Origin: Octopus sinensis
Taxonomy: Eukaryota
Direction: 5' to 3'
DNA length: 64,000 nt
NCBI RefSeq assembly: GCF_006345805.1
Contig: NC_043000.1
Coordinates: 30,256,001-30,320,000 of the forward strand
Shown: positions 2,361 to 58,320 of the stretch, in pieces
Layout: every line of letters starts with the position of its first letter
Position numbering within the stretch: position 1 is the first letter of the stretch
Notes under the pieces: model-generated
What the model was told of the DNA's origin: nothing
The model's input: only the letters and a program-made list of their open reading frames with translations
Databases searched by the model: none
Made by a program: the position numbers and the translations under genes

Positions 2361-2600
2361 ATTCAGGTCCCTGCCTGGAATCGAACTCGGAATCTTGGAT
2401 TTAGAGCGCGGGCTACTAAACCCAAGATTCCGAGTTCGGTTCCAGACAGGGACCTGAATAATAATAATAATAATAATAATAATAATAATAATAATAATAA
2501 TAATAATAATAATAATAATAATAATAATAATAATAATAATAATAATAATAATAATAATAATAATAATAATAATAATAATAATAATAATAATAATGATGAT
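2361..2600 (+). mobile_element. tRNA-like SINE head as a fold-back (2361-2459) followed by (TAA)n
   Basis: 2361-2404 is the reverse complement of 2416-2459 (B-box-like gagttcggttcc); same family as 48640-48690. Confidence 0.75.
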
Positions 2601-2619
2601 AATAATATTAATAATAATC

Positions 2620-3765
2620 TCACTCCTCTGGAACTTCACCATTCAAACTGACAGAAAGATAGATGCAAATGGGCCAGACATCATATTGAAAGACTTCAGA
2701 CAAAGACCATGCCTCCTCATTGATATGACTGTCCCAATCGATATAAACGTATCTGTCAAGACCTACCAAAAACTGAGCAAATATAAAAATCTTGAAATAG
2801 AAATCAGCAAAATGTGGAACCTGAAGACTAAAACAATACCTGTTGTCATAGATGCCCTGGGAATGATAGCAAAAGGGGCTGATTGCTACCTAACTCAGAT
2901 ACCAGGAAACCCAAAAATGGCAGAAATACAAAAGATAGTGCTCATGGGAACTGCTCATATCCTACGCAAAATACTTTCTATGTATCCCAAGTTTTAAAAC
3001 AAACCTAGTTTTCGTTTTTTTTTTTTTAGACATTCACTGGTACAACACTAAATACAAAACAAAATATATGGCACACTAGGCATAACAACAACATGAACTT
3101 CCAACCTGTTGTCTCTTGAGGTCTGGGTGAGACTTGGAGCCAACTTGTACAAATATAAAGCAAAAGTCAAACATAGAATAATAATAATAATAACAAATGC
3201 CCTGATGCAGTACCAGACAGTGGCTCTCATGGCTTCTGAGCTTAACTGATTGGAAGTGTTATCATGTACATTGTTTTGTCTTGGTATAAAAGATGGGCTA
3301 CAGCAAATATTCTGCTCAATACCACAGATTTGCTTGTCAGTTGTTTGACCTTAACCAGTTGACCATGTCCCTTAGTGGCTGATGATATGTGCATCTCTGA
3401 CCACAAGCAGAAGTAGTGGGGGAGCATCAAATCCATGTGTTGAGAGGGATTCTTTGGGGTTTGAATAATTCACCTCTGGAAACATGGGTGTTTTGCTCAA
3501 CATCCTTAAACATCCCTTATTCAGGGACCTTTTGAGCGGGATGGGTTACTCGACCAGAAGACAATTCTAACTGGGCCCTACCTGCAAGGTCATGCGCTGT
3601 TTATCTTGATATGAGATCACCATGTCGCCCACATATGTTTGTGATGCATGTGCCTAGTGTACCCTTATCAGACGGGTAGTCATGATGGTTATATTGGTCT
3701 TCGTATATTTTACCCCAGAGTCACTTTGATGGCATGCACTGCTCTCTCACTCAATTATAATAATA
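2620..3765 (+). mobile_element. 5'-truncated R4/Dong-like non-LTR retrotransposon: restriction-like endonuclease C-terminus plus 3' UTR
   Basis: ORF 2593-2997 has PDIILKD..CLLIDMTVP..K..KLSKYKNL..W..IPVVIDALG, a PD-(D/E)xK RLE pattern; flanked by (TAA)n. That 3000-3765 is its UTR is inferred. Confidence 0.8.
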
Positions 3766-3769
3766 ATAA

Positions 3770-3950
3770 CATCGAAAAATATCTCACGAATGAGAACCTA
3801 GGTTCAAAATTTCCCCAAGACACCTGATGAAGGCTGGAGGGTATATCAGTCGAAACGTTGTGATAACAACAAACAAGATGAGGATAAATATCTGTCAAAT
3901 GTAAATAATGTAAATAATGTACATAATTCCTCATGTCTTAAATATAGAAC
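3770..3950 (+). mobile_element. PLE-type terminal segment containing a minimal hammerhead motif (3819-3864)
   Basis: gacac-CTGATGA-a-ggctg..cagtc-GAAA-cg-T-T-gtgat; homologous to 48245-48410 (minus) and 48745-48945. Confidence 0.7.
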
Positions 3951-4049
3951 AGGTATATTGGAGTTCGCTTTTGGATGTCAACTATATTAAACAAGCAATT
4001 TTGGTTTAAAATTTTGGTACGAGGCCAGCAATTTTGTGAAAGGGGATTA

Positions 4050-54719: not shown

Positions 54720-56432
54720 TGTGTGGCTGTATGGTAAGTAGCTTGCTAACCAACCACATGGTTCCGGGTTCAGTCCCACTGCGTGGCATCTTGGGCGAGT
54801 GTCTTCTGCTATAGCCCCAGGTCGACCAATGCCTTGTGAGTGGATTTGGTAGACGGAAACTGAAAGAAGCCTGTCATATATGTATATATATATATATATA
54901 TATATATATATATATATATATATATATATATATATATGTACGAGGGGCGTTCAATAAGTAATGCCCCTGACCCACTTCCCATAGCAGTAGTGCAACGAAA
55001 CTTGGCACAGTTATTAGTCTTTTTCTACATAGGAACCACCCAGAGTTACGCATTTCTCCCATTGTTTGATGCAGCTCTGGAGACCGTTTTTGGTCCTCCA
55101 ACCCGAATGTGACTTCAGAAATCAAGGCTGCATCATCTGGGAAACGCTTTCCTTTCAAAAACAACTTCATGACTGGGAAGAGGTGAAAATCAGAGGGTGC
55201 AAGGTCAGAAAAGTAGGGGGATGGGGGAGGAGTTCATAGCCATACACCTGTGCTTCTGATCTGGCGACAAGCGAGTTGTGGACCGGAGCGTTGTCCTGCA
55301 GGAGGAGGATGTCTTTGCTGATCTTGCCCCGCCTCTTGATTTTGATAACTTCTCTTAATTTCCTCAAAAGTGAAGCATAATAGGTTCCTGTAATTGTGGT
55401 ACACTTTGCCAGGAAATCTGTCATCACTACTCCGTCCTGGTCCCAGAAGACTGTGAGCATGACCTTGCCAGCGGAGGGCTGCACCCTTGCCTTCCTTGGA
55501 GGGGGTGAGTCACGGTGCTTCCACTGCATTGACTGGGCTTTGGTCTCTGGATCATCGTGATGGACCCAGGTTTCATCCTGTGTAATCAGTCTTTTGAAAA
55601 ATTTTGACTCATCTTCTTGGCACATCTCCAAATTCACCCTCGAGCACTCGACGCGTTCTTGCTTCTGGAAAGGCGTGAGCAACCTGGGAATCCATCTGGC
55701 AGACACCTTTTTCATATGCAAATGGTCATGAATGATAGTTTCCACAGACCCGGTACTAATCTTGACCTCATGGGCTATTTGGCGAATAATTATGCGTCGA
55801 TCTTCCAAAATGGCAGCCTCAACTTGATGGACAGATGCCTCATCAATGGCAGAAGGGGGCGACCAGATCTGGGAGCTGTTTCCACAGAGTTCCGACCATG
55901 TTTGAATTCACGATGCCAGAGTTTTACAAGGTCATATGATGGTGCATCATCACCATAAGTTACTTTCATTTCATCAAAAGTCTCCTGTGGTGTGCGTCCT
56001 TTCAAATACAAAAACCGGATCACTGCTCGACACTCAACAGGCTCCATTTCACACTTGACTCGGTTGAAACACCTGTAAATCAGAAACCACAATTAATTCA
56101 GAGCTGTAATTTGCCACTTACTCTATAGAGATATAAATGATTGCACATGCAAAATTTCAGCTAGATCCAACAATGCAAGTGGGTCAGAGGCATTACTTAT
56201 TGAACGTCCCTCGTATGTGTGTGTGTTTGTGTTTGTCCCCCTAGCATTGCTTGACAACCGATGCTGGTGTGTTTACGTCCCCGTCACTTAGCGGTTCGGC
56301 AAAAGAGACCGATAGAATAAGTACTGGGCTTACAAAGAATAAGTCCCGGGGTCGATTTGCTCGACTAAAGGCGGTGCTCCAGCATGGCCGCAGTCAAATG
56401 ACTGAAACAAGTAAAAGAGTAAAAGAGTAAGA
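54720..56432 (+). mobile_element. SINE family A copy split by a mariner insertion
   Basis: 5' half at about 54720-54938 and 3' half at 56216-56432. Confidence 0.9.
54941..56213 (-). mobile_element. Full-length mariner transposon (1273 bp), transposase frameshifted
   Basis: TA target duplications; TIRs cgaggggcgttcaataagtaatgcccctgacccac; MEPVECRAVIRFLYLKG..PRSGRP, WIPR, QDETW, LLQDNAPVH, LLPHPP. Confidence 0.95.
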
Positions 56433-57454
56433 GTATACTTTTCATATTTTTTATAGTGTGATGTAACGCTTTGGAATAACAATGTTTGCGGCTGAAGAGA
56501 GCTTTAAACCATCTTTTATGTCAATTATACACTGATGTAAGAACGGGTTGTTTATAAAGCTTGAACCACGTGTACCGCGATATCCTTTGTATTCTGTTTT
56601 TCATTTTATTTGATATATTCTCTCTCACCTCTGCCACTATCTGGCATATAGACGCACTTACACTTATCAAGTATTCACCCTGAATTTACAGTACCTATAT
56701 ATATATATAATATATATATATATATATATATATATATATATATACGTTCAGTAAACAAGCCAGATATAGGATTTCCTCAAATACACGGCGAAGAAGCTCC
56801 GACTAGTCACCTTCAGCTCTTAACACCTTCTACAATTTGGATTCTTCAGAATCTGTAAGTTGGCATTCGTCAGTATTTCTCACATCTTCGCAGTGGCGAA
56901 CTTGTAGCTGTCGATAGTCGATTCATAATGTATTGCAAAAAATGAATTATTATGATGCTCGGAAGCTGATGAAAATATATGGAATCAATTTTTGCAAAAA
57001 TATTTATTTTATACAAGGAAACGACAAAACACAAACAGGAAATCAGCTACAATGGAATAAGAGATACAGATGAGAAAAAAATAAAGACTAAAATATTTGG
57101 AAAACTAAATACAAAAGTGAAATTCGATTTCTAAAAACATGAGAGAACCGACATAATCACTCAATGGCCAATAACTCGCAAAGCTCGTTAGACAGGAAGT
57201 AAACCAGTGTAAAAGCTAACAATAGCGGAAATAATCTGTGCTATAAGCAGAAACATAATGTTTGATTCTAGCTGCACATGAGCATTGCGTAGACATTACT
57301 ATTTGCAAGAATGGAATATGAAATGACGGTACTAACACGCATCGCAGACTATATTCTTTTACTGCTTGTATTTTAGTTCTTTCAGATACTGGACTGCGAC
57401 GGTGCTGGGGCATCACTTGGGAAAGATTATATATATATATAGTTAATCCAAACA

Positions 57455-57850
57455 TGAAAACACAAGGAGAAAACACAACAACGCGAAGACGTGGAACAAG
57501 TATAGTGTTATTGGACACTCAGAAAAGGGAAGAAGAAGGATTTAACGTTTCAAGCGGAGCTCTTCGTCAGAAACATAGGAAAAGGAATGATCTAAGGAAG
57601 GGAAGACGGAAGAAAAAATGGCCATATATTCATATATAAATCCTCACTAAAAAGAACAAACAAGAACACAAAAAAGACAACAACGCGAGCACGTGGTACA
57701 TGTAAAGTATTAGCAGAGGATCAAGGAAGGAAAGAAAGGTGGTGTCATGTTTCGAGCAAAGCTCTTCTTCTGAAACAAAGGAAAGTTAAATAGAAAAGGA
57801 AGACGGAGAAAAGAAAATCTCCTACGATTCGCTGTTGGTTACATTTTGAA
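57455..57850 (-). mobile_element. Two tandem copies of PLE-terminal family D with HHR remnants
   Basis: Reverse complement gtttCTGACGAagagctccgcttGAAAcgttaaat near 57540-57575; second copy near 57745-57775. Confidence 0.65.
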
Positions 57851-57884
57851 ATACACACACACACACATATGTGTGTGTGTGTGT

Positions 57885-58320
57885 ATAAAATTATAATTTA
57901 GGGTATCTAAGAGATATCTCCACGCTGGAAATAGCAGTCAAAATTTGATTCTAAGACCACATTAAATGTTCATACAGCACCAGGAAAGAAGACAAAGAGA
58001 CAAAATAAACTAGCAAAAAAATACTGGATGATTACTAGTATATTTTGTATCGTGCTGTATGGACACTTAATGTGGTTTTAGAGTCAAGATTTGACTGTTA
58101 TTTCCAGCGTGGAGGCATCTCTTATATATCCTAAATTATAATTTTAAATAATTATTACATTTGAAAGTTTTTTATTCCCATGCTGGACACCTGATAAGAT
58201 CGGTATTTTAAATATCGATGCTATCCTTATTTATATAAAGTTATATTTATACTGTGAAATTTGATTTAATCCTAAATCTAATTTTTCCCTGTAAGTTTGG
58301 ATATACTCCCTAATGTTGTT
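57885..58320. repeat. Fold-back repeat, same family as 6010-6360
   Basis: Arms about 57890-57980 and 58052-58145. Confidence 0.8.

Follow-up and report, generated by a model that had tools for sequence, protein, structure and literature searches.

Penelope-like insertion architecture of short hammerhead-bearing and U6-containing elements at (TA)n tracts in an Octopus sinensis genomic region

In a 64,000-nt stretch of the Octopus sinensis genome (here called the window), short hammerhead-bearing inserts and a U6 insert have the full insertion architecture of Penelope-like elements (PLEs), beyond mere inversion. An inverted 5'-truncated copy recurs in them, in many cases joined by a direct partial copy (pLTR); the tail extension is one-sided, both outer ends lie in (TA)n, and an autonomous PLE in the same window has this layout too. 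This architecture was observed together with hammerhead motifs, an association with (TA)n, tails shared between families, and PLE coding capacity. Probably, a PLE lineage and dependent short noncoding elements were repeatedly inserted into (TA)n by target-primed reverse transcription. That PLEs carry minimal hammerheads (HHRs) in their pLTRs and leave inverted 5' copies, as the preliminary description of this DNA stated, is published, as are PLE tails, the bias toward (TA)n, the lack of TSDs, nonautonomous derivatives, and the presence of minimal hammerheads on opposite strands (Craig 2021; Cervera and de la Peña 2014). Nonautonomous partners with 3' similarity and trans-retrotransposition have also been published for PLEs.

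Self-BLAST and a repeat finder bore out the earlier report of an inverted copy fused to a main copy at all seven listed loci and revealed ~8 further fold-backs in the window. The arms at the listed loci are as follows:

2.4 kb: 2360-2404 / 2416-2460, 93% identity
6.4-7.3 kb: 6490-6809 / 7353-7032, 98.8% identity
24.9-31.9 kb (PLE): 30682-31148 / 31902-31436, 98.7% identity
38.7-39.1 kb (U6 insert): 38735-38895 / 38980-39138, 89.5% identity
40.1-41.0 kb: 40167-40434 / 40983-40716, 99.3% identity
48.2-48.9 kb, outer pair: 48284-48394 / 48911-48801, 89% identity
48.2-48.9 kb, inner pair: 48543-48612 / 48621-48690, 90% identity
53.6-54.1 kb: 53577-53727 / 54093-53937, 92% identity

Across the window, fold-back arm identities span 78% to 99%. 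The sense of the hammerhead motif, ORF, U6, or A/B boxes was used to orient the joints, and the inversion was found at the 5' end, as proposed, with a head-to-head (5'-5') joint in 8/8 orientable cases (chance of about 0.004 if the two orientations are equally likely). Among (TA)n-type fold-backs, 17/24 outer ends lie ≤2 nt from a (TA)≥5 run, compared with 6% of random positions. The (TA)n flanks claimed earlier thus hold for the hammerhead-bearing and U6 inserts but not for the tRNA-type ends, which are >1.4 kb from any (TA)n; similarly, no TSD is discernible in the (TA)n-type inserts, but the 48.2-48.9 kb pair has one of 13 bp. Nor are the inserts all unrelated, as had been stated, given that the U6 insert and the 40.1-41.0 kb family have a common 3' tail and that the inserts at 2.4 and 48.5 kb represent a single family. 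The suggested comparison with SINEs came out as expected within the window, where 0 of ~9 copies of an abundant 400-nt tRNA-derived SINE have a 5' inverted copy.

The autonomous element is a near-complete canonical PLE with an RT, a CxxC linker, and GIY-YIG at the C terminus. It is arranged as inverted copy, direct partial copy, and main copy, a tripartite form that recurs in families B and C (see below):

31436-31902, plus strand: inverted 5'-truncated pLTR copy; its outer end, with a ~40-nt tail extension, adjoins (TA)n at 31889-31930; HHR-like motif 31765-31809
30682-31425, minus strand: upstream direct partial copy (pLTR) with the ~40-nt tail, then a short (TA)5; HHR-like motif 30775-30819 (TTGACAA core, helix III CCGG)
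27057-30720, minus strand: coding region, with an ORF1-like frame (285 aa, 29863-30720) and an RT, CxxC linker, and GIY-YIG ORF (27057-29340) with several frameshifts and one stop
25554-27056: microsatellite-expanded spacer
24854-25553, minus strand: 3' pLTR with a short 3' end (...ctta, then (TA)n); HHR-like motif 24896-24943

Of the PLE copies, only the inverted one and the direct partial one have the ~40-nt tail. Named relatives that match the RT best come from Octopus bimaculoides (78%), Argonauta, and O. sinensis. Relatives of full length measure ~750 aa and have RVT_1 and GIY-YIG, and the window PLE aligns to aa 11 to 772 of one of them, including KKCGRPNCKTC and LLYVIRCEGCHEDYIGQT. At one O. 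bimaculoides locus (L001), the PLE likewise has an inverted pLTR piece beside (TA)n. The HHR-like motif of the window PLE has a U-U closing pair, a helix I of just 4 to 5 bp, and no folding signal (z = -0.35). This PLE copy is itself frameshifted, which counts against the PLE-based explanation.

Minimal type I hammerhead motifs occur in no fewer than four short families (B, C, F, and J), two of which show U3-A8 core covariation:

Family B, 6366-6809, minus strand: main copy, with (TA)n at the end of its 124-nt tail (6366-6489) and, in its 320-nt body, a minimal hammerhead of canonical type I at 6643-6690
Family B, 6845-7036, minus strand: direct partial copy, final 70 nt of the body and the 124-nt tail
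Family B, 7032-7353, plus strand: inverted copy, short 3' end in (TA)n; hammerhead 7151-7198
Family C, 40105-40434, minus strand: inverted copy with its outer end in (TA)30, 268 nt and the 62-nt tail W; U3-A8 hammerhead 40336-40377
Family C, 40431-40683, plus strand: direct partial copy, 3' 191 nt and tail W
Family C, 40716-40983, plus strand: main copy, (TA)n at its short 3' end; U3-A8 hammerhead 40773-40814 (helix III CGCG); two-hairpin 3' tail 40917-40983
Family C, 13293-13434, plus strand: independent insertion, 31 nt of inverted tail W (13293-13323) and, with the short end, the body's 3' 110 nt (13325-13434)
Family C, diverged subfamily, 42376-42507, plus strand: inverted tail plus terminal ~30 nt, 22-nt loop, direct terminal 28 nt; flanked by (TA)n left and right
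Family F, 53582-53936, minus strand: main copy, 3' end in (TA)n; hammerhead 53777-53844 (canonical core, helix III CGGCCG, unpaired A at stem II)
Family F, 53937-54093, plus strand: inverted copy, 82 nt from the next (TA)n
Family J, 19165-19503, minus strand: main copy 19165-19397 and shorter inverted copy 19397-19503; decayed hammerhead 19305-19351 (U3-A8, G12 changed to A)

At 6.4-7.3 kb, in a correction to the earlier reading, the main copy is the minus-sense one. The two arms may have unequal 3' ends, as in the PLE itself: in family B, the main copy has the 124-nt tail and the inverted copy does not, and in family C at 13.3 kb, the inverted piece consists of tail W alone, which is absent from the main copy. 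Inner break points differ among the four family C insertions. Family J also forms a fold-back in O. bimaculoides (locus L003), where its motif is intact (3097-3143).

A strict hammerhead scan of the window returned four matches, all within fold-back arms, while five shuffles returned 0, 0, 2, 0, and 0. For families B, C, and F, helices I and II reappear in the predicted folds. The description of these inserts as hammerhead bearing is upheld by descriptor-level minimal motifs in B, C, F, and J but not by Rfam, whose hammerhead models, run on families B, C, and F, gave no match even at E ≤ 10; in the Rfam scan of the window, U6 was the sole detection. The U3-A8 core, the unpaired nucleotide at stem II, and the palindromic helix III seen among the window motifs agree with published PLE minimal hammerheads, and the minimal type I motifs of B, C, F, and J resemble those of PLE pLTRs.

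The U6 insert consists of two parts:

38735-38910, minus strand: inverted copy with its outer end in (TA)n, U6 from ~nt 53 to its end and 121 nt of unit X
38911-39247, plus strand: main copy, full-length U6 (38911-39017; 99.7 bits, Rfam model positions 1 to 105 of 105), 163-nt unit X, and 67-nt family C tail (39181-39247) ending in (TA)38

The 3' 67 nt are 95.5% identical to the structured tail of hammerhead family C, and the predicted fold of this tail type comprises two hairpins (z = -2.9). Because the inverted arm abuts U6 nt 1, the U6 copy has no upstream promoter. Read from its sequence, the insert is a promoterless full-length U6 joined to a 230-nt unit and is probably a template-switch chimera. 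It is known from this single locus; neither metagenome scans nor a search of 74 kb of other cephalopod DNA yielded another copy.

The surroundings of the tRNA-headed inserts differ:

2361-2618, plus strand: tRNA-like unit with inverted 5' copy 2361-2404; AAT-type tails on both arms, the right one (AAT)54
48286-48947, plus strand: head-to-head composite pair of tRNA-like head, microsatellite, and 190-nt body; TSD ATACTAGGAATAT at 48273-48285 and 48948-48960

The tRNA-like unit at 2361-2618 has a B box and a partial A box; ARAGORN calls no tRNA. A hammerhead-like string in the 48.2-48.9 kb body was rejected, as it fails the helix tests. The (AAT)54 tail runs into an (AAT)n array of nested insertions in one orientation, namely, a LINE 3' fragment (2619-3176), an element M whose two copies each have (AAT)n to either side, and a "body" element. 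The tRNA-headed inserts lie in or beside such arrays with a same-orientation R2-superfamily LINE and other (AAT)n-flanked insertions. This LINE family encodes an RT followed by a CCHC and an RPD..D..K C terminus; among solved structures, it matches R2 proteins best (4e-12) and L1 ORF2p more weakly (1e-6), and it has (AAT)n on both sides in locus L004. In the O. vulgaris annotation, Dong-R4 elements rank as the most active of the LINEs, and one family is labeled SINE/U.

The proposal that PLEs mobilize these short elements in trans therefore fares unevenly: the hammerhead-bearing and U6 inserts match PLE architecture, but the tRNA-headed inserts have only head-to-head duplication in common with it. 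Given their (AAT)n tails, their distance from (TA)n, and the 13-bp TSD, PLE mobilization of the tRNA-headed inserts is unsupported. They likely form a separate (AAT)n-associated community driven by an R2-superfamily (Dong/R4-like) LINE and not by the (TA)n PLE system. Either 5' inversion is not exclusive to PLEs or another PLE lineage acts on these inserts. The occurrence of head-to-head duplication outside the (TA)n system also counts against the PLE-based explanation.

Both tRNA-like units are fold-backs remote from (TA)n, with AAT tails on each arm and, in one of them, a TSD; these features and the (AAT)n-linked neighbors favor an alternative that we nevertheless regard as unlikely, namely, that head-to-head duplication is a general reverse-transcription outcome here and not a PLE signature. 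It could arise from cDNA snap-back self-priming or dual priming by other reverse transcriptases. The (AAT)n-specific R2-superfamily LINE would have made the tRNA units, and any LINE could have made the U6 insert; mammalian U6/L1 chimeras offer a parallel for LINE-made U6. However, the U6 insert has both ends in (TA)n and the 3' tail of a hammerhead family, neither a LINE tail nor poly(A). Snap-back cannot produce an inverted arm with a tail that is missing from the main copy, and L1-type twin priming gives consecutive segments rather than duplicates. Within the window, 5' inverted copies were not seen in LINE fragments, M, or the abundant SINE.

Three further families (G, H, and K) repeat the layout of B, C, F, and J with no hammerhead motif:

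Family G, copy 1, 6005-6359, minus strand: fold-back 6100-6196 / 6271-6370, one-sided 105-nt extension; (TA)n at both ends
Family G, copy 2, 57886-58333, plus strand: fold-back, 105-nt extension, and 92-nt tail T2 (58242-58333), ending in (TA)n
Family H, 19750-20075, plus strand: fold-back with 84% arms and tail T2 (19989-20075); (TA)n on the left
Family K, 18816-18992, no strand assigned: spacerless hairpin, 88-nt arms (85.6%), beside (TA)n

Family G also has unequal 3' ends, a short one at an internal TATATA and a long one with T2, a tail common to families G and H. Tails are the sole orientation marker in these families, K having none, and they could be DNA fold-back elements. It is less likely still that the fold-backs in general are MITE or Foldback DNA transposons (e.g., Tc1/mariner derived) with long TIRs and incidental or captured hammerheads, placed inside (TA)n by insertion at TA dinucleotides. 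The near-symmetric arms of G, H, and K, the symmetric 240-nt arms of family J in O. bimaculoides, and TA-targeting mariner elements that insert into (TA)n here (a transposase ORF at 55167-55808 lies within a SINE that is split) are consistent with that origin. However, arms are unequal and inner breaks vary per copy (four layouts in family C; family J in the window versus L003), the tail is often on one arm only, and the inverted piece at 13.3 kb has no sequence in common with the main copy. Families B and C contain a third, direct partial copy exactly like that of the coding PLE, short and long 3' ends sit at internal TA-rich sites, and the hammerhead, U6, or ORF sense places the 3' ends outward without exception.

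That the inverted copies were produced by duplication once the elements had inserted, or in silico, through fork switching, hairpin-mediated repair, or assembly fold-back chimeras, is very improbable: (TA)n tracts are palindromic and fragile, nearly all fold-backs are located at long ones, and several have arms 98 to 99% identical, but (TA)n lies at the outer ends and never at the arm junction (the opposite of a microsatellite-centered palindrome), only certain families are affected (and not the abundant SINE, though many of its copies abut (TA)n), the range of arm identities means that the structures differ in age, the same architecture occurs at two independent O. bimaculoides loci, and the elements are 0.1 to 1 kb long within unique flanks, unlike read-scale chimeras.

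In the favored explanation, insertion by a PLE lineage, the GIY-YIG nuclease would break a (TA)n target, and both exposed DNA ends would independently prime cDNA on the A/U-rich 3' region of the element RNA, at either the true end or an internal UAUA-like stretch, giving long or short 3' ends. The two 5'-truncated cDNAs would be joined head-to-head, and an extra template jump would sometimes add a direct partial copy (pLTR). The expected product would thus comprise an inverted copy, in some cases a direct partial copy, and a main copy. Each outer end would be a 3' end in (TA)n, just one side would carry a tail extension, and a TSD would not be recognizable. The 3' tail modules common to different bodies are presumably recognized by the reverse transcriptase. 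For the U6 retro-pseudogene, the RT most likely started on a 230-nt element that has the family C tail and, at the 5' end, moved to U6 snRNA as its template, and the chimera may then have received, or been copied with, the same inverted 5' arm. By self-BLAST, no short family resembles the window PLE in sequence, either at the pLTR or at the 3' end, which counts against the explanation; we therefore infer trans mobilization by a PLE RT/GIY-YIG from architecture, and the enzyme-substrate relationship, like the dual-priming steps and the template switch, is put forward on the same conditional footing.

Overall, the phenomenon is mostly textbook Penelope biology and not new, to which the U6 chimera, at its single locus, adds one modestly new item.

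An inverted copy abutting the main copy, which the preliminary description had listed at seven loci, was recovered at all seven by self-BLAST, a repeat finder, and short-word BLAST, with arms that are 89 to 99% identical. Additional fold-backs, i.e., inverted copies joined head-to-head (5'-5') to a main copy, occur in the window both in short families with minimal type I hammerhead motifs (designated B, C, F, and J) and in families without the motif (G, H, and K):

13293-13434, fold-back of family C, the family at 40 kb
42376-42507, fold-back of family C
19165-19503, fold-back of family J
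6005-6359, fold-back of family G
57886-58333, fold-back of family G
19750-20075, fold-back of family H
18816-18992, fold-back of family K

In every case that can be oriented by a hammerhead, an ORF, or U6, the arms are joined 5'-5' and the outer ends are 3' ends. The flanking by (TA)n that had been described for several of these inserts holds quantitatively: 17 of the 24 fold-back outer ends lie no more than 2 nt from a (TA)≥5 run, compared with 6% of random positions, and (TA)n is absent from all inner fold-back junctions. Families B, C, F, and J show the insertion architecture of Penelope-like elements (PLEs) together with microsatellite targets. The control proposed at the outset, i.e., SINEs, behaved differently, as none of ~9 copies of a 400-nt tRNA-derived SINE has a 5' inverted copy, with several of them abutting (TA)n. 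In the sole local SINE inversion (14156-14420), a microsatellite separates two copies placed tail-to-tail, the pattern that two separate insertions would give.

The short families differ in where their copies end. At 40.1 to 41.0 kb, family C consists, in order, of an inverted copy with the 62-nt tail W, a direct partial copy with W, a 32-nt spacer, and a short-ended main copy. Family B at 6.4 to 7.35 kb (in minus-strand order) consists of a short-ended inverted copy, a direct partial copy, a spacer, and a main copy, with its 124-nt tail on the direct partial copy and on the main copy; the direct copies seen in B and C are partial ones. In the family C insertion at 13.3 kb, only the outer 31 nt of W are present, inverted, and they are joined to the final 110 nt of a short-ended body, and in the diverged copy at 42.4 kb the break points differ again from those of the other C insertions. 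Copy 1 of family G ends at an internal TATATA, and copy 2 continues through the 92-nt tail module T2, with which family H ends as well. For the 3' tail of family C, folding gives two hairpins side by side (z = -2.9, with 0 of 200 shuffles folding as well); the diverged subfamily has a two-sided change, from A-T to G-C, in one pair of the terminal hairpin (GCCATA/TATGGC), and the pair next to it is broken. This tail occurs in the window at the following positions:

40917-40983, family C 3' tail
39181-39247, family C 3' tail
13352-13434, family C 3' tail
42478-42507, family C 3' tail

Across 65 kb from O. bimaculoides and O. sinensis, and in L004, a cephalopod-like ENA contig, no extra copies were found of B, C, F, G, the U6 unit with its downstream sequence X, or the tRNA unit, and the same set of units was absent from metagenome contigs in two exact-pattern scans. 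A further repeat, at 12150-12410, is single in the window and forms an 87% fold-back in O. bimaculoides (locus L001, 7212-8188); the latter is flanked by microsatellites, lies immediately upstream of the (TA)n of a PLE, and has no clear hammerhead motif.

The autonomous PLE of the window spans 24854-31902 and is arranged as follows, in minus-strand order:

31436-31902, inverted copy of the pLTR (the partial tandem copy of the element)
31425-30682, direct partial copy, ending in a tail of ~40 nt and (TA)5
ORF1-like frame
29340-27057, frame encoding RT, CxxC linker, and GIY-YIG, with several frameshifts and one stop
spacer expanded by microsatellites
3' pLTR, shorter by ~40 nt, its end at an internal TATA placed directly in (TA)n

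The pLTR repeats are 97% identical in direct orientation (24854-25553 versus 30730-31425) and 98.7% identical in inverted orientation (30682-31148 versus 31902-31436), and the ~40-nt tail is one-sided, being found on the upstream copies only. The conceptual RT (27.8 to 29.3 kb) has 2107 homologues at E ≤ 1e-5, with the best named relatives in Octopus bimaculoides (78% identity), Argonauta hians, and O. sinensis, and its full-length relatives are ~750 aa long with RVT_1 and GIY-YIG domains. A tblastn comparison with one such relative, P0001, covered aa 11 to 772 at 55 to 71% identity; Pfam RVT_1 scored 22 bits, below threshold, on a single fragment. Translation of 27054-27959, which aligns at 63% identity with the endonuclease half of P0001, gives a KKCGRPNCKTC linker followed by LLYVIRCEGCHEDYIGQT...TVH (GIY-YIG with CCHH), and the Pfam match to GIY-YIG is weak (E = 0.065) because the C terminus is frameshifted. 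The element thus encodes a PLE-type RT and a GIY-YIG domain with CCHH and an upstream CxxC linker, and this copy of it is defective. The same family is present in O. bimaculoides (L001) at ~84% nucleotide identity, again with an inverted pLTR piece between (TA)n and the ORF. These relatives place the window in an octopod cephalopod.

This layout, one-sided tail included, is the published PLE arrangement. As in the PLEs described by Craig, Yushenova, Rodriguez, and Arkhipova (2021, PMC8557442), there is an RT with a CX2-5CxxC linker and, at the C terminus, a GIY-YIG domain, a pLTR formed by a partial tandem copy and carrying a candidate hammerhead motif, an inverted 5'-truncated copy beside the upstream pLTR, a one-ended tail, and a (TA)n bias with no discernible target site duplication (TSD). 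Two differences concern tail length and target: some elements here have tails of 62, 105, or 124 nt, compared with the published 30 to 40 bp and the ~40 nt of the PLE itself, and the (TA)n preference was stated for Naiads and only hypothesized to be linker mediated for Neptune (PMC8557442), whereas here it accompanies an element with a putative hammerhead and a C-terminal endonuclease. By domains and architecture, this element resembles canonical endonuclease-positive PLEs of the Neptune or Penelope-Poseidon type. A second RT, degenerate, ~25% identical to the PLE RT, and interrupted by (ATAC)n, lies at 10432-11312 (+) in an unusually GC-rich setting (44 to 48% GC at 8 to 12 kb); just upstream (9447-10001, +) is an ORF stretch that looks LINE-RT-like by eye and in which a Pfam RT domain was not found.

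The hammerhead calls are descriptor-level motifs from our own scans, and those of families B, C, F, and J and of the PLE are candidate ribozymes:

7151-7198 (+), family B, canonical hammerhead
6643-6690 (-), family B, canonical hammerhead
53777-53844 (-), family F, canonical core, palindromic helix III CGGCCG
40773-40814 (+), family C, TTGANAA core, helix III CGCG
40336-40377 (-), family C, TTGANAA core, helix III CGCG
24896-24943, PLE pLTR, TTGANAA core, helix III CCGG
30775-30819, PLE pLTR, TTGANAA core, helix III CCGG
31765-31809, PLE pLTR, TTGANAA core, helix III CCGG

The motif of family J, also with a TTGANAA core, is decayed in the window and intact in O. bimaculoides (L003). A strict scan gave 4 matches, compared with 0, 0, 2, 0, and 0 in five shuffles; families B and C pass it, and F passes when one unpaired nucleotide is allowed. 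Helices I and II were recovered in predicted folds of B, C, and F, and not convincingly for the PLE motif, in which all three pLTR copies have the U3-A8 core, helix II closes with U-U, helix I has 4 to 5 bp, and the fold has a z of -0.35; the O. bimaculoides copy of this motif has a core mutation. Across the whole window, U6 was the sole Rfam family detected at the gathering threshold, and at E ≤ 10 no hammerhead was among the 150 matches listed (nearly all of them miRNA-like and driven by microsatellites), with 215 further matches scoring lower. Rfam hammerhead models searched at E ≤ 10 against short stretches of B, C, and F gave no match, and these models may not cover minimal PLE hammerheads.

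The motifs resemble the minimal type I hammerheads of PLEs reported by Cervera and de la Peña (2014, PMC4209133), which share the short helix III whose loop is palindromic (CGCG, CCGG, CGGCCG), the TTGANAA core (a U3-A8 covariation of the C3-G8 pair), the unpaired nucleotide 5' of stem II, and motif pairs 100 to 700 bp apart on opposite strands. The likeness extends to metazoan non-LTR retrozymes, small noncoding hammerhead repeats interpreted as nonautonomous PLE derivatives (Cervera and de la Peña, 2020, PMC7229834; Li, Clavereau, and Pollet, 2026 preprint), and a derivation of animal retrozymes from PLE pLTRs has been published. However, retrozymes form multicopy tandem arrays, whereas the elements here are dispersed fold-backs in microsatellites, and several families share the PLE-type architecture without any hammerhead. 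Two other candidates were rejected: a hammerhead-like string in the 190-nt "body" (3815-3870, and in both arms at 48.3 and 48.8 kb), because helix II is unconserved in three copies, position 17 would be G, and no match arises even with two mismatches; and long-helix-II "hammerheads" in the 570-nt element M (3372-3499 and 20333-20456), taken as spurious. A candidate U3-A8 string at 43136-43179 (+; TTGACAA ... GAAA gtgt TA) has a weak, AT-rich helix I and no associated fold-back. The O. sinensis locus L002 has a minimal hammerhead (16093-16147) with a canonical core and the palindromic helix III CAGCTG; just beside it is a stretch (15907-16049) homologous to 44767-44909 of the window, where no motif was detected.

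How the inverted arms arose can be approached through their ends. One reading holds that these are MITE or Foldback elements with fixed, symmetric terminal inverted repeats. This reading may apply to families G, H, and K, and it is disfavored for B, C, J, and the U6 unit by variable break points, unequal tails, and a third copy; unequal arms and varying break points speak against it for the PLE as well. In L1-type twin priming both target DNA ends prime, and the 5' part of one RNA is inverted, so that the segments are consecutive. Dual-end priming yielding an inverted 5' segment would be common to that process and to the fold-backs, but the arms here duplicate one 3' region, with independent 3' ends, and are not consecutive parts of one RNA. 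Snap-back self-priming was rejected for C, B, and the PLE, where a tail on one arm is missing from the other; more generally, the inverted arm is neither a snap-back copy of the main cDNA nor a DNA-level palindrome, because the 3' ends of the arms often differ and a tail can be confined to one arm.

The arm ends indicate that each arm must have been primed separately. We infer that both ends of a GIY-YIG break would prime on element RNA, each arm starting from either the genuine 3' end or an A/U-rich stretch farther inside that can pair with a (TA)n primer; the two truncated cDNAs would then be joined, and now and then a template jump would add the direct partial copy. Of the mechanisms of retrotransposition, PLE integration is understood least and has no in vitro system, and nonautonomous partners with 3' similarity as well as trans-retrotransposition of host transcripts have been published for PLEs (PMC8557442). 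The 3' ends and pLTRs of B, C, F, and J had no similarity to the PLE of the window (its only one) or to the PLE loci in L001 to L003, and no short family resembles this PLE, so that the trans-mobilization claimed in the preliminary description would be a hypothetical pairing of enzyme and substrate.

The U6 insert spans 38735-39247. Its main copy of U6 (38911-39017; Rfam, 99.7 bits) covers model positions 1 to 105 of 105, through the T tract, and is followed by the 163-nt sequence X and by a 67-nt end that shares 95.5% identity with the family C 3' tail and runs directly into (TA)38. The inverted arm, which matches the main copy at 89.5% identity, takes in U6 from ~nt 53 onward together with 121 nt of X; its outer end is in (TA)n, and it supplies the base preceding U6 nt 1. 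As it abuts nt 1, no space is left for a U6 promoter. The locus therefore has the features of a template-switch chimera, i.e., a full-length, promoterless snRNA 5' of a 5'-truncated retroelement in the same sense. Template switching at the template end accounts for the mammalian U6/L1 chimeras, which have the same full-length 5' U6, the same-orientation 5'-truncated retroelement, and no U6 promoter (Doucet et al., 2015, PMC4476161), and by analogy it would account for the octopus chimera. Unlike U6/L1, the octopus chimera is a single locus with an inverted partial copy attached 5', and U6 is joined to a short element whose structured, PLE-type tail ends in (TA)n, compared with L1 and its poly(A) in mammals.

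By this analogy, the simplest account of the locus would be that an RT copying the RNA of X and the C tail switched onto U6 snRNA within a PLE-type system. No further U6-X copies were found in L001 to L004 or in the metagenome scans, and the O. vulgaris annotation lists a "SINE/U" family without analyzing it. The proposal that U6 had been mobilized by the PLE system agrees with the fold-back, the (TA)n ends, and the C tail, and the template switch would be a single event deduced from one locus. We tentatively consider, while leaning somewhat against it, that PLE-type machinery uses structured 3' tails exchangeable between unrelated bodies (the C tail between a hammerhead element and U6-X, and T2 between G and H) and switches templates onto U6 snRNA. 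If true, this would be the Penelope counterpart of the mammalian U6/L1 chimeras, and the unequal arm tails would be a direct genomic record of independent priming at both break ends.

The tRNA-headed units (2361-2460 and 48536-48690) had been placed in the same system. Both are indeed head-to-head duplicates; every other PLE hallmark differs. Their ends lie 1.4 to 2.6 kb from any (TA)≥5, the 2.4-kb unit has a separate AAT-type tail on each arm, and the insert at 48.3 to 48.9 kb, in which two copies of a composite unit (tRNA-like head, microsatellite, and 190-nt body) stand head-to-head, has a TSD, the 13-bp direct repeat ATACTAGGAATAT on either side; repeats of that length are found in ~1% of comparable window pairs here, mostly in microsatellites. 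Strings TGGCGTAGTGG and GAGTTCGATTC, identified by eye, are A-box-like and B-box-like against what we take to be the consensus, and ARAGORN called no tRNA at either unit at default or relaxed (85%) thresholds. The first unit belongs to a nested array in one orientation:

2361-3950, (AAT)n array: tRNA-like hairpin, (AAT)54, LINE 3' fragment, (AAT)5, M, (AAT)4, 190-nt body
2619-3176, LINE 3' fragment, with ORF 2593-2997
about 3196-3752, element M, 570 nt

The second copy of M likewise has (AAT)n on both sides, and the array points to (AAT)n-specific retroelements that form a community of their own, apart from that of (TA)n. For ORF 2593-2997, Pfam and solved-structure searches gave nothing and a homology search gave only unnamed short octopus fragments; its LINE context comes from L004 alone, where the LINE is nearly full length (1920-4941) with (AAT)n on both sides. 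This LINE encodes RT, then CCHC and an RPD..D..K C terminus, and matches solved R2 proteins at 4e-12 versus L1 ORF2p at 1e-6; these structure matches and the domain order make it probably Dong/R4-like. R4/Dong-type LINEs of the R2 superfamily resemble it in the RT followed by CCHC, the PD..D..K-like C terminus, the (AAT)n on both sides, and the same-orientation (AAT)n-flanked short elements. Dong LINEs have (TAA)n specificity, and to our knowledge SINE copies duplicated head-to-head have not been described for R4/Dong-type LINEs. In the O. vulgaris annotation, the LINEs with the most activity are those of Dong-R4. LINE clades with a restriction-like endonuclease are typically target specific, microsatellites included (Kojima and Jurka, 2015, PMC4640811).

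The tRNA-headed units most likely depend on the (AAT)n-flanked LINE, and their inclusion in the PLE system is an overreach of the earlier reading. Dual priming of this head-to-head kind may extend to tRNA-like SINEs with (AAT)n tails, which would mean either a second PLE lineage targeting (AAT)n or an R2-superfamily LINE making Penelope-like fold-backs.

The window as a whole is AT rich (~35% GC), with 141 tandem-repeat rows and 4.4% covered by (TA)≥5 runs. Its minisatellites include ~23 copies of a 15-nt unit, CAGCTCCGCTTGACT, at 49637-50017 and ~60 copies of a 12- to 13-nt unit, AATTTTCGGTGAA, at 59696-60430. The ~400-nt tRNA-derived SINE, which has an internal microsatellite, is present at 438-802, 13830-14267, 47023-47438, 52972-53394, 58752-59152, and 60682-61101 and as fragments; several copies have (TA)n directly at the 5' end, and one has a 50-nt tandem duplication of the head (53333-53451). 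At 54723-56437, a ~1.3-kb mariner-type element with a transposase ORF (55167-55808; Pfam Transposase_1, 8e-24) interrupts a copy of this SINE at the internal (TA)n/(TG)n tract of the SINE.

Overall, pLTRs, inverted copies, tails, (TA)n bias, and minimal hammerheads have all been published, and the octopus case is known PLE biology at unusually high local density; current views are not overturned, as the main features were published earlier for other animals. The additions are modest: a chimera headed by U6 and ending in a PLE-type tail, tail modules common to unrelated bodies, and arms with unequal ends, which are relevant to priming. With ~15 independent insertions in 64 kb, the window constrains the PLE mechanism, which has to yield outer ends that are independently chosen 3' ends at TA-rich sites, a microsatellite-free inner junction, and an occasional third direct copy. 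The U6 chimera, if recurrent, would extend RT template switching onto snRNAs beyond LINEs. (TA)n tracts appear to serve as landing pads, and many cephalopod repeats filed as "unclassified SINE," "MITE," or "unknown" may be PLE dependants misfiled by annotation pipelines.
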